Shown piece by piece: positions 1 through 5,313 of a stretch of 64,000 nucleotides of DNA (position 1 is the stretch's first letter; each line of letters begins with the position of its first letter). The notes under the pieces are model-generated. The model was given only the letters and a program-made list of their open reading frames with translations. It had not been told where the DNA came from and searched no databases. This DNA is from Paraphysomonas bandaiensis (Eukaryota; Protista; Chrysophyceae), in NCBI GenBank assembly GCA_965644295.1, contig CBFFRP010000324.1, forward strand, positions 248,001 through 312,000, in the 5' to 3' direction. A program made the translations under genes and the position numbers.

Positions 1-3000
1 AACAAACAGATCCAAGTACTCGGGCTTGCGTCCATTGGTTACTATCTTTTGCATAAACTCCGCCAAGTACCTCCTTTGGCATTGCTTTATCAGAAACCTA
101 TTTCCAGAGAGTATAGAGCGAACAACATTCGAACTACGGACATCATCATCAACTCTATCCAAGAACCAAGTTAGATACGTGAAAACAATTTCTTGGTTCG
201 TCTCATTGTTTCTGACGAAGTTACTTAGTAAATCATTACATGCGCGAATGATTTTCTTAATAACAACATGAGGTTCCCCCAAACTCGCATCAAGCAGAGC
301 CACCTGAACGGCCATAATGTTGTCAATTGCACCCATGTTCGCCAATATTTTCTGAACTTCTGGGTCCTCTGTGTGCGGTGGTTCAAATTCAATTATTTTG
401 GTAGGCGCATTAACCTTTAGAAGGTCTGTCAATTCTACCATTATGTCATGAAGCTGATCCGCAACCCTGTTATCTTCAGCAGTCTTCAATTCCCCCCATA
501 TTTCAAAGTTCTCAGCAAACTTTTTCATCAATTTCAACTGCGACGATATGGAAAGGAACTTATCCTCAACTTTCGGATTTGATATTATTTGAATGTTTTC
601 CATTGCTTCACGTAAGCGTTGCTTTTCACTTTTATGTATCATAAGCAAATATAACGCCTCCTGTACTAAATTGGGATCCGAATACATAACAATATCCAAT
701 AGCGCATCATCGAACTTTGCAGGAATAAAGGCTGCACAGCTGTCGTCTGCATCCATGGTTCTCATGTAGATATCAACAGCATCACGACTTTTCCCATCAC
801 TTTCGGCATTATACCATTGCACGAACGCGTGAAATGATGACGACAGTTTTCTATCTTGAATTCTGTCGTGAACAATAGACAAAACACGCAAAATTCCGGC
901 AATAGTTCTGACTTCGCTCTCCGTTGTCGTTTTGTATCGTGCTGGCATTGTCCACGGTTTAACTACCTGTGCACCCTCAGCTATCTTTTTCAGCAACCTG
1001 GCTGCTCGAATCACTCTTATCAGTCTAAGTATACGAACCGTTTTTAGCGTTTTGGCAAAATTTGCAGCTCTTCCCAAGCCGGGAGAATCTATAGAAAGAA
1101 GAACGATATCCAAAGTGACGACGGCGATATCAATAAGATTAAATGGTGACTGGCAAAACGTGTGGACGTTTTCATACACAGCAGCGTAGCAGTACATTCG
1201 AATCGTCAATTCCAATATGAAAACAATGGAAACAGATAAATCAAAGGCATACAACCCAGCAAACGTTTCGGAGGGGTAAAACACTTGGACAGCAGAGAAA
1301 ACAGTCGTTACAACAACCAATGTGAGCACAAATGTCAAAAATTTCATCGACTCGAACACTCGCAAAAGCTTCAATTCGAATTTGTCACTGAGTTCAACTC
1401 CACCTCCTTCGTCCTTAAATCGCATGGATTTATGACTTTTTCCACGAGACAGGTTATTCGACGAAAGAGTCAGCTTCTTCGATCTCGCTCTATGTATCGC
1501 ATCACTCTTCTCCGACGGCATCACTTTTCGAGAGGCACGAAACGACTTTCCCACTGACGATAGCGATGACATGACTTGTCCTTTCACACTAGCACTTTTA
1601 CTAGCACGCGCCTTCGCAGCAGCTGCAGCAACGACGGATTCCAACGTCATGTACTCATCATTATCTTCATCATCCTCATCATCACTTGCAGCAACATCCT
1701 CCACTACAGTAGAGTACAGACGATGGTCATCAAGAGCATCCACGAGTGGGTTTATTATGTCTTGGAGTTGTTCAGGTGTACTGTAGTAGCCAAACCGAAC
1801 CAAATCAAGTAGTAGATCCATCATTTCTGCGGACAACTCATCGCACTTAGTTGTATCAAAGCTACTATGCAAGTAATCAGATATAATTTGTTGTAGCAAT
1901 CCGAAGCAGTACGGGCTACCCGAATGGTATTTATTAAAACTGCTGTGATGGCCTCCCTCTAAATCTGACGAAGTCTTAATAAGACGAGGAAATCTGGCCT
2001 CCACTTGCGGGTCTCTGTCAATATAGAGTGTGCGCAAAATGCGACACACGGGAGCTTTATACTGATTTATAGATGATTGTGTTTTCAGTATTGTAAGCAA
2101 CACCTCATAAGAATAAAATTTTTCTAAGAGCTCTATAGCCACATAATTTCGATCCAAACATAGATCAGCCACAAGGTACAGCTGGGCCACAAAATAATCC
2201 ATGATTTGTCGCTTCCTTTCGGTAATAGTTTTAGCTTTACCCGAATCCTTTCGTTTCAAACGCTTGGAACCGCCCCCAGATAATGCGGCATACGACTGCA
2301 GTCGCTTTCTACCTTGAACAGCCACCGTTGATGTACGCCTTAAGAGAGACAACTCATTCTGCATCGCCTTCGGTTCAGAGCTAGGAGGTTCGATGTACAT
2401 CGACGCCCTACCAGAAGCCTTATCACCATTAGCGCAAATGAAACGAAAAGGAACATCAGTACTGCGCCCGAAAAGAGTCTTCATCGTATAGTCGTCTGCG
2501 GAATCTGGAGATGCAAACCAACTCAATAAAAGGTTAGGAATGCCGTTCTCATGCAACGTGTATCCCCTAACGCATGATAAATTACCATCTGCAGGAAAAT
2601 ACATCTTCTTTTCCGACCACGGAATCTTCTTCAGAAACCTATCATCTTCTTTGATAGATATTAATACACTTCGGCATTTCTTCAATAAATTCGACGACGA
2701 CGATTCCATAGATATCGGAACAAACCCCAGAGGTGTTCTGTTCGGATTTCCACCACCGCGGGACTTCTTACCAGATCTAGATGGACTTGCATTGCTAAGG
2801 AACTTGGATGCCGCACCCCCTACTGAGGAATTGAGTCGAAACAAATTTTCCCTTTGAAAAAGAGCATTAGCAACTAAGCGCTGTGTGCTATCCACTCCGC
2901 TCGGACATGTGCAAGTACTCTGCACATAGCAATCACCCTCAAGTACAATAGAAATGAAGTCTTACCCTCAACAGCTTCAAAATAGTCACATTCATTTCAG

Positions 3001-5313
3001 TTTCAACTAATAAATCCAAAAATATTTTGATTTCTCTGTCTCGAACCTAAGCCACCATAAAAATACGAGCAAGCTATCATAACTTTATTGAGATATTTAC
3101 CTTCGTTTGCAACATTTGTAAATTATCTCGGAGCATTTCTTGGACACAAGCAACAGCAAGCACCTGGTCTTTGACCTATCCAGTTTGTCAAACAGCTGCT
3201 CGAAAATCATCTAGAATAGTCGCACCTGATTAAGCAGCAATGGAAAGTAATCCGCAATGCTGATTTGATTAATATGACTCTTCGATATTCCTAGAAACAA
3301 AACATTGAAGCAACTCTTCGCGAGCTCCTGCGTCAGGGACTGAGCTCGTCCGCCACCCATTGACCGGATGCTCGGCACCGTCTCGAGAGAATTTTGAACA
3401 ACTGTGTTGCCAGTCCTACGCCGAGGAATACCACTGGACACAGGCTCAGCCTCAACCAGAGTATTGCGCGACTTTTTGGTTTTATGAAGCGCCTCTATCA
3501 CCACATCCGCGAGTGACATACGACCACTGTTTTTGTCCTTCCCTAATCGCGCGGCTGAAGTCAAGCGTAGTATTTTACTTTTGCGTGCAGCGGAAGCGAA
3601 CGAAATTCGTTTTCTTGTTCCTTCGGGTTTAGGCATGACATCACGGAAGGTATCATTGTCACAATCGTCATCTTCAGCATTCTCCTTCCTCTCGTCGAAA
3701 TTGGTGCTATACGAATGTGACGTCAGTTTATTTAAACGGGTATTTTCATGTAACTCTTTCAGCATTCCCAGAGCGCACATCTCGACTATATCTAAGAGCA
3801 CATGCAATATTCCCTGTTCCCGAATCATTGTCTGCCTGATCACCACACGAGCAGATCCCACAGGCTCAAGTAGTGCAGTTATTTCATCATCAGAATGGGA
3901 CGAATCAACTGCGGGCGACAGGAAAACACATAAGAAATCCAGGCATGAAAGTAGTGTCTTGAACTCAGCTTCTACCAATGCTGACGGCATTGAAAGGATT
4001 TCTCTCGAGCGAACTGAGAGCTCAAACTTCCTTAGAATGGATGCCGCCTCCACACCCACAAATAGGTCAGCTCCCATAGTCTTGTGAGTCCTGGAAGAAA
4101 GCAGCAGCGGTAGGGCCATCGACCTGTCTTTTGAACCACAACATTCCGATCGAACTCCGTGCTTAGATTTTTTAAGAGAGAGCCAGAGGCCCTTACAGAG
4201 TAGCTGAATAACCGCGCCCTCTTGGACAGCAGTGCCAGCTTCCACTTGTTGTGACAACACCACCTCGAAAAGAGAGCAATCCCGGCGGTTCTTTACAGCA
4301 CACACACCGTCAGTTTCCATCTTCATATACAATCCTGTATTCAAGTCTCGAAGGGCAATGAGACCACCTCGATTCCCCACGGGCCCACCCTTAAACATGT
4401 CCTCGAATTCAACCATCCACAGAAGATTCGTACCAACATTGCAGTCCGACGCTGCGAACGACAGTTGTATGCTGTTGGACATAATGACATTAGCGCGTTG
4501 GGTAAGTCCTGGTTTCTGCTGATCCAATGTTAAATAGGTTGATGTCTCTGGCTCCTGAAGAGACACCAACTGCCCGGCCAGAATGTGTTTCGACTTACTC
4601 TCTTTGGCCTGCTGAAATATGTAAATAGTCCATATTGAGCTCTCGAGGGAACAGTTAATCTCTTTGTTGCCATCGGGGTTAGTCTTGGGTGCCTTTCTTG
4701 CAGCGTGAATATACTCACTTGATCTCTCATGAACTCGAATGAAACATTCGTTTTCGTTTACAATTTGCTGGCCTTCTCTGTCGTACTTATATCTAGGCAT
4801 AAATTCTACCCAGCTCATCGCATTTCCTCTTTCCATGAGTGTGACGCGCATATTCTCTCTCTCCTGCTTCGCAAGCAAAATTGATGACACCGTAAGAAAT
4901 TTCCGAGTTTTAACATGTCGCAGCTGTATCACATCACCGAAACCAACTAATTTACCAGTCTTCATAGCCATCAACTTCTCGTTTAATCTGTTTTCGTTTG
5001 ATGCAGCCATGATTAATTGTCGCTCGTGTTCCTTGTCATTCACTGTCAAAGAATTTCCACGTAAAGCTTCTGGCCCATCTTCCTCATCATCTCGCTGTAG
5101 TTGCATCATTCTGTCTTCATATTCTTTGACAGCATTGTATTGATTCTGTACAGTAACTTCCCACAGACAATTCTCAAAAGAGTGTGGATCTTTAATCAGA
5201 GACAAATCATCACTAAGAATATCTTCAGAAGAAAGCCAGCCATCATTAGGTTTGCTGTGTCGCAGACATACAATGTCACCAATGCGAAGCGACCCTGGAG
5301 CAGCCATGGCCAT
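1..5313 (-). CDS. ITPR: Inositol 1,4,5-trisphosphate receptor-like (IP3R/RyR superfamily) channel, 5' portion, with an inserted voltage-sensor domain; 3' part lies outside the window
   Basis: Exons 5313-3226, 3175-3101, 3046-2966 and 2919-1 (open at the edge), separated by three phase-0 GT-AG introns of 50, 54 and 46 nt. The translation has IP3R hallmarks: LRIGDIVCL at the N-terminus, FGDVIQLRHVKTRKFLTV (beta-trefoil/MIR), RQTMIREQGIL (RIH1), YFVAQLYLVADLCLDRNYVAI, LYIDRDPQ, LVRFGYYS, and RIH2 QKILANMGA...FVRNNETNQ...NGRKPEYL. Confidence 0.93.
985..1365 (-). other. Voltage-sensor domain (S1-S4) encoded in frame inside the IP3R-like exon 4
   Basis: Manual translation: FESMKFLTFVLTLVVVTTVFSAVQV (S1), FDLSVSIVFILELTIRMYC (S2 with FxxExxxR), PFNLIDIAVVTLDIVLL (S3 with NxxD), KTLKTVRILRLIRVIRAARLLKK (S4, a basic residue at every third position). 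Confidence 0.92.

Follow-up and report, generated by a model that had tools for sequence, protein, structure and literature searches.

A degenerate canonical IP3 pocket in a transcribed, voltage-sensor-bearing IP3 receptor-like channel of Paraphysomonas bandaiensis

Gene structure and fold at the locus

The window analysed here is a 64,000-nt stretch of DNA from Paraphysomonas bandaiensis (contig CBFFRP010000324.1, positions 248,001-312,000), and all coordinates given below are positions in this window. The contig, abbreviated C324, holds a minus-strand gene of the inositol 1,4,5-trisphosphate (IP3) receptor (IP3R) family. Spliced RNA contigs and an intact open reading frame (ORF) were observed, and the gene is therefore transcribed and intact; it encodes a channel of the IP3R family into which a voltage-sensor domain (VSD) is inserted. 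The encoded protein, of ∼2,990 aa, retains the fold of the IP3R ligand-binding region, and most of the residues that contact IP3 in metazoan receptors are replaced.

The gene model comprises four exons, all on the minus strand. Exon 1 (3226-5313; 696 aa) was assigned from the ORF and RNA contigs; it encodes the suppressor-like domain, beta-trefoil 2 and ARM1 and holds all three motifs of the IP3 pocket. The corresponding genomic ORF runs from 5313 to 3214 (700 codons). Intron 1 (3176-3225; 50 nt, GT-AG) was spliced out in contigs from X1 and X2, transcriptome-like runs of this organism that come from two studies, and was unspliced in X7, a DNA run collinear with the genome. Exon 2 (3101-3175; 25 aa, VKDQ...LQTK) extends ARM1/RIH1 and fits the family consensus, and exon 3 (2966-3046; 27 aa, VRDREIKIF...) fits the profile consensus “irereieifveklre”. 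Intron 2 (3047-3100; 54 nt) and intron 3 (2920-2965; 46 nt), both GT-AG, were likewise defined by RNA contigs. A model with one 181-nt intron after exon 2 was rejected, as the RNA contigs have two introns flanking the 27-aa exon. The exons lying between these three very short introns (2920-3225) are thus themselves only 75 and 81 nt long. Exon 4 occupies positions 1-2919 of the window (973 aa) and continues for 3,806 nt beyond the window start on C324, to a total of 2,242 aa; RIH2, RIH_assoc, the pore and the C-terminal zinc finger lie along it. Single-base differences from the genome were observed at 4846 (G>A), 5200 (A>C), 5339 (T>C) and 5353 (A>C) in the X1, X2 and X7 contigs, that is, in all runs covering them. 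These are probably allele or strain differences, and none falls within the three pocket motifs.

Each exon was translated and searched by itself rather than as part of one joined protein. Exon 1 matched the Pfam families PF08709 (Ins145_P3_rec; E 9.6e-24, 84.2 bits, cut-off 23) and MIR (E 5.1e-8, 33.5 bits, cut-off 25.6). The suppressor domain/beta-trefoil 1 homologue (4600-5292; aa 8-238) was delimited by PF08709 and by alignment to IP3R3. Within it, Y175 corresponds to IP3R1 Y167 and IP3R3 W168, and 53 of 72 relatives have Y, F or H at this column; the kept aromatic residue would agree with a retained coupling role for the N-terminal module. Because an insert splits the domain, RIH1 yielded a weak match (aa 657-697, 18.2 bits) that lies under the cut-off of 22.3. 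Exon 4 matched Ion_trans (E 3.5e-12) and, both over cut-off, RIH (RIH2; E 1.1e-9, 38.5 bits) and RIH_assoc (E 6.5e-8, 32.8 bits). The inserted VSD (S1-S4; 982-1341) was recognized from a match restricted to profile positions 4-112 of PF00520 (46.5 bits) and from hidden Markov model (HMM) matches to the VSD in relatives. Its insertion point is between RIH1 and RIH2, in the cytosolic solenoid. The pore and the CxxC...H zinc-finger region aligned by phmmer to residues 2462-2603 of IP3R3 (aa 802-941 of the C-terminal piece, E 2.8e-36).

An AlphaFold model of exon 1 had a predicted local distance difference test score (pLDDT) of 83 and a predicted template-modelling score of 0.80; 475 of 700 residues exceeded a pLDDT of 90, and the model was confident outside one loop. 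When this model was submitted to Foldseek, the best match was IP3R3 (E 7.8e-31) and the top matches were all IP3Rs, with ryanodine receptors (RyRs) first appearing at rank 30. The template-modelling score to the IP3R1 ligand-binding domain (3uj4) was 0.75, and sequence identity to metazoan IP3Rs in these comparisons was ∼22-24%. Alignment of the family N-terminal profile with solved IP3Rs gave an E value of 1.8e-80. The N-terminal ∼700 residues are therefore homologous to the ligand-binding region of IP3Rs and, by the AlphaFold model, well folded; the fold is kept, whereas the ligand-contact chemistry is lost.

The canonical IP3 pocket

A preliminary description of this DNA, made by eye, had matched three short motifs of the channel to the ligand-binding motifs of IP3R1 and had concluded that the IP3-contacting residues were degenerate. 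The motifs were found at the positions proposed, namely IMSNSIQ (aa 277-283), VIRQTMIREQ (aa 491-500) and KSHINQ (aa 678-683) of the minus-strand ORF 5313-3214, and their correspondences to IP3R1 were reproduced by phmmer and by family-profile alignments. In the phmmer alignment to human IP3R3 (aa 8-334, E 8.5e-24), M-S-N-S-I-Q was paired with L-R-T-T-L-R. Alignment of a 76-sequence family profile to solved IP3Rs paired kiRQtmlrEQG with reRQklmrEQ and kdnhanq with edyrknq. A profile made from metazoan IP3Rs alone could be matched to the divergent proteins only in pieces; it therefore served as a cross-check, and the residue mapping rests on the family profile.

The beta-trefoil 2 motif IMSNSIQ (4465-4485, minus strand) falls in the loop after the strand at aa 274-278 of the AlphaFold model. 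It replaces LRTTGR, such that R265, T266, T267, G268 and R269 correspond to S279, N280, S281, I282 and Q283, respectively. In the ARM1 helix VIRQTMIREQ (3814-3843, minus strand), R504 and K508 are replaced by V491 and T495, and R506 and R511 are kept as R493 and R498. The further ARM1 helix KSHINQ (3265-3282, minus strand) replaces DYRKNQ, and none of Y567, R568 and K569 is kept (S679, H680 and I681). Taken over the 11 IP3-contact positions, the R511 equivalent is retained, T267 is conservatively replaced by Ser, and the other nine are non-conservatively replaced. One of the seven basic contacts is kept, as is one residue of the R265/K508/R511 triad (S279/T495/R498 here). The preliminary description had held that only the R511 equivalent was left in the first ARM1 motif; the retention of R511 and the loss of R504 and K508 stand, but the R506 equivalent is retained too. 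As a positive control, metazoan IP3Rs were passed through the same pipeline and 16 of 16 read RTT(G/A)R, R.R.K..R and YRK, so an intact pocket is detectable by this procedure.

The residues R265, R504, K508, R511, Y567, R568 and K569 are discussed as pocket residues for IP3R1 in PMC13319452, where the single replacement K508Q is reported or cited as abolishing IP3 binding. Given that both R265 and K508 are lost here, IP3 gating at the canonical site is unlikely. The canonical IP3 site is very probably absent, judging from the aligned residues, and it is quite likely that canonical IP3 gating has gone with it.

A variable, mostly disordered insert (3349-3768, minus strand; aa 516-655) splits ARM1/RIH1. 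The equivalents of R511 and Y567 are separated by 180 aa, as compared with 55-56 in metazoa, leaving ∼125 extra residues. Two stretches, aa 536-600 and 613-654, had low predicted confidence (pLDDT <50) and are predicted to be disordered, and a short helix spans 602-615. A basic, Ser-rich insert of ∼130 aa had been described previously. The insert is present at about that length, but its first third is acidic (13 D/E in the first 50 aa), and only aa 566-655 are basic and Ser/Thr-rich (19 K/R and 19 S/T in 90 aa, with several RxxS/T motifs). Across the family the loop ranges from 28 to 298 aa and is therefore a hypervariable loop rather than a conserved module; it may be a lineage-variable linker, and that it is phosphoregulated is a guess. 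The idea that the Ser-rich loop acts as an IRBIT-like phospho-pseudoligand was set aside, because the basic residues through which phospho-IRBIT is bound are missing from the pocket (PMC13319452).

Pocket, voltage sensor and calcium sensor among relatives

To the studied gene were added 75 relatives from an exhaustive representative search, giving a family alignment of 76 N-termini. A canonical pocket was present in none of the 75; between zero and three of the seven basic positions were kept, with both mode and median at one. The R506 column is R in 73/76 and the R511 column R in 56/76, and K508 is replaced by T, N or S in 52/76. Asn stands at the Y567 position in 58/75 relatives. With the exception of R506, R511 and this Asn, the pocket columns have average or above-average entropy. 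The RQxxxREQG and NQ anchors beside the lost residues are nearly invariant. Given that the lost positions are variable, there is no sign of a new basic cluster being fixed, and no compensating conserved basic column was found in the three motif neighbourhoods of the alignment.

A VSD was detected by profile in 35/75 relatives, most of the others being fragments too short to tell. In eight further VSD proteins, for which only the ARM1 motif was checked, the canonical form of that motif was found in none (K508 is lost). Two long database proteins without a VSD, P0056 and P0124, also have a degenerate pocket. P0056 displays a clean deletion of S1-S4 (aa ∼1000-1060, as compared with aa 1050-1190 of P0078) with a short basic S4-like remnant. 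P0080 was rejected as a third such protein, since it is an alternative gene model: two models exist for this one Cymbomonas gene, and the VSD is included in the other, that of NCBI. The VSD-type family spans the prasinophyte green alga Cymbomonas tetramitiformis (P0080, P0151) and chrysophyte stramenopiles (P0206 from Ochromonadaceae sp. CCMP2298; P0165).

The P. bandaiensis genome itself contains at least eight paralogous VSD-type IP3R-like loci, on contigs C324 (this gene), C426, C409, C238, C182, C288, C46 and C152, each of which matches the inserted S1-S4. A canonical pocket was found in none of the seven other paralogues. Four further loci of the IP3R/RyR superfamily lack a VSD (C395:121459-131749, C144:123203-134165, C363:135229-145292 and C148:94312-104205), and the canonical IP3 triad was found in none of them; for these loci the RTTGR loop was read only from a weak HMM alignment and the ARM1 motifs partly by eye. 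C363 and C148, which are near-identical multi-exon paralogues, read ..QNCAREQ.. (K508N) and are without the RTTGR loop in that weak alignment; when the C363 beta-trefoil piece was compared with solved structures by phmmer, the match was so weak that the loop could not be located. C144 reads ..RNQLITQH.. (K508Q, R511T). C395 and its relatives P0195 and P0197 read ..RQN(L/I)(L/I/V)SDS.. (K508N, R511S); C395 is a single ORF of 2,886 codons with only four database relatives. Phosphoinositide-specific phospholipase C (PI-PLC) X domains are encoded at no fewer than five loci (at least C308:29752-30226, C331:29278-29763, C188:14694-15164, C255:172791-173258, C84 and C218), and the organism therefore probably makes IP3. 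Yet the canonical pocket is found in 0/12 of the IP3R-like loci of this genome.

A tree was built from the C-terminal ∼1,000 residues (LG+G4 “quick”) with metazoan IP3Rs as the outgroup; branch support was by Shimodaira-Hasegawa-like approximate likelihood ratio test (SH-aLRT) only. The VSD proteins form one clade (SH-aLRT 97) that includes the studied gene. The VSD-less C363/C148 pair branches outside this clade, although a long-branch warning applies to its join with metazoa. P0056 and P0124 are nested deep within the VSD clade, and their lack of a VSD is a secondary loss. The tree requires three changes for the VSD and one for the pocket, with VSD gain and pocket loss each placed on a single deep branch. 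The pocket-less state thus appears to be ancestral to the whole VSD-bearing IP3R-like clade.

The two subclades of the VSD clade differ at the calcium sensor. When an ARM3-to-pore profile was aligned to human IP3R3 (E 2.6e-99), the studied channel was found to have Asp where the human receptor has E1882 and Gly in place of E1946; these positions map to exon 4, ∼1,550-1,750 nt before the window start on C324, and fall within aa 353-409 of the piece translated there. The first replacement is conservative, retaining an acidic residue, whereas at the second the glutamate is lost. E1946Q abolishes the function of human IP3R3 (PMC9522344). Throughout this gene's subclade, whose members include the studied locus, C426, C409, P0003, P0009 and P0019, E1946 is replaced by K, R, G, V, S or C. 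By contrast, the other subclade, which includes C238, C182, C288, C46 and C152 of the same genome, keeps both glutamates. Given the degenerate pocket and the loss of E1946, neither canonical agonist site is intact in the subclade of the studied gene.

Gating of the channel and comparison with known systems

The observations can be explained by the following model. The cleft between beta-trefoil 2 and ARM1, being without the basic residues that coordinate the IP3 phosphates, would not serve as a second-messenger receptor. Instead, the N-terminal ring would transmit or stabilize a conformational change, as in RyRs, and the activating input would come from elsewhere in the protein. Within the subclade of this gene, which has lost the Ca2+-sensor glutamate as well, the inserted VSD would be the only recognisable candidate input. 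By analogy with RyRs, it is reasonably likely that the N-terminal module is a ligand-free gating ring of the RyR type.

Several points weigh against this model. The receptors of Trypanosoma, TbIP3R and TcIP3R, have poorly conserved pockets and nevertheless release Ca2+ on IP3 in IP3R-null DT40 cells (PMC6027440; PMC9694693), and residue loss is therefore not proof of ligand loss. The PI-PLC X domains at no fewer than five loci imply that IP3 is probably available to the channel. In addition, R493, R498, K677, H680 and R489 are still present close to the cleft, where they could bind phosphate weakly.

These points bear most directly on the alternative that a remodelled, non-canonical site still binds IP3, another inositol phosphate or a phosphoinositide. 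Such a site has been proposed for oomycete IP3Rs and functionally shown for those of trypanosomes (PMC9694693, PMC6027440), and the presence of PI-PLC genes, the conservation of R493 and R498, the recurrent Asn at the Y567 position (58/75) and the confident AlphaFold fold of the cleft-forming domains would all be in keeping with it. However, a family median of one basic contact in seven, variability without a new consensus at the lost positions and the lack of a compensating conserved basic column near the three motifs make it distinctly unlikely here. That the degeneracy might instead be an artefact of alignment or gene model, or the mark of a decaying pseudogene, could be suspected from the low identity to metazoan IP3Rs and from the in-frame stop after exon 1 in the genomic ORF. 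The stop, however, falls in intron 1 (50 nt, GT-AG), which the RNA contigs show spliced out, three independent alignments concur on the residue assignments, the RQxxxREQG and NQ anchors are nearly invariant, and the ORF of ∼2,990 aa is intact in a family under clear constraint. This explanation is thus largely refuted and highly improbable.

The preliminary description had gone further, proposing that the channel traded IP3 gating for voltage gating, with the degenerate pocket standing as independent evidence of a role for the VSD. In favour of a functional coupling between pocket loss and VSD gain, the pocket is missing from all VSD-bearing members examined, it is present in metazoan IP3Rs, which have no VSD, and in this gene's subclade, where the Ca2+-sensor glutamate is also gone, the VSD is the only recognisable input. 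The tree offers little scope for the expected co-variation of residue loss with VSD presence, however: there are only three independent contrasts, at most one of which is in the predicted direction (sign test, p = 1). The VSD was gained once and the pocket lost once, effectively n = 1, and co-variation therefore cannot support the proposal. Equal degeneracy without a VSD, which the preliminary description had itself named as counting against its proposal, occurs in the four VSD-less loci of the same genome (C363/C148, C144, and C395 with its relatives P0195 and P0197) and in P0056 and P0124, which lost the VSD yet have not regained a pocket; degenerate pockets are also published for oomycete and trypanosomatid homologues, with no VSD described in those papers (PMC9694693, PMC3194816). 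Moreover, the position of degenerate C363/C148 outside the VSD clade suggests that the pocket was lost before the insertion or independently of it. What survives of the proposal is the degenerate canonical pocket, with one of seven basic contacts; the independent support for the VSD does not, since a loss common to the whole family and to its VSD-less cousins says little alone about a built-in voltage sensor. A functionally coupled exchange of this kind is unlikely.

A different line of argument favours a role for the VSD within the model of a ligand-free ring. The combined loss of the IP3 site and of E1946 in this gene's subclade is the strongest circumstantial argument, as read from the residues, that the VSD matters here, and it differs from that of the preliminary description. 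It also constrains the VSD-bearing channels, in that the whole family is without a canonical IP3 site and one subclade is also without a key Ca2+-sensor residue. Protist IP3R homologues with degenerate pockets have been reported before, and this observation alone is therefore not new; the replacement of E1946 goes beyond it. The two natural subclades, one with the VSD only and the other with the VSD and the Ca2+ site, offer an experimental contrast for asking what the inserted VSD does. A more general caution is that pocket degeneracy is poor evidence for a changed gating mode, as illustrated by a genome with PI-PLC and canonical pockets in 0/12 loci.

Among known protist systems, the IP3R homologues of oomycetes and trypanosomatids share poor conservation of the mammalian IP3-binding residues (PMC9694693, PMC4820453, PMC3194816), and Phytophthora possesses a single ITPR paralogue, in which no IP3-binding domain is discernible (PMC4820453). 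These homologues were compared by published description only. The response of TbIP3R and TcIP3R to IP3 is shown by experiment (PMC6027440).

Metazoan IP3R1-3 are the best match in sequence and fold among solved structures and share with this channel the domain order of suppressor/beta-trefoil 1, beta-trefoil 2 (MIR), ARM1/RIH, RIH2, RIH_assoc, six-transmembrane pore and C-terminal zinc finger. Unlike them, this channel has one of seven basic contacts, Gly at E1946, an ARM1 loop longer by ∼125 aa and an inserted, complete S1-S4 VSD.

The N-terminal domains A, B and C of RyRs form a three-domain gating ring without IP3-coordinating basic residues, and the N-terminal region of the studied channel has the same fold and likewise lacks such residues. 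In other respects the two differ. By fold and sequence the channel is nearer to IP3Rs than to RyRs (Foldseek E 7.8e-31 versus 6e-22), it is of ∼2,990 aa as compared with about 5,000 aa, and, unlike in RyRs, no SPRY domains or RyR repeats were found in Pfam scans of exons 1 and 4 (three pieces), the 25- and 27-aa exons 2 and 3 lying outside the scan. In skeletal muscle, the voltage sensor that drives RyR1 belongs to another protein, Cav1.1, and acts in trans. It is a tentative and somewhat doubtful possibility that the members of this gene's subclade are release channels driven by voltage alone, each uniting in one polypeptide what the Cav1.1-RyR1 pair divides between two, and that the sister subclade combines voltage with Ca2+. 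In contrast to the RyR1/Cav1.1 pair, the voltage sensor of the P. bandaiensis channel is present in cis.

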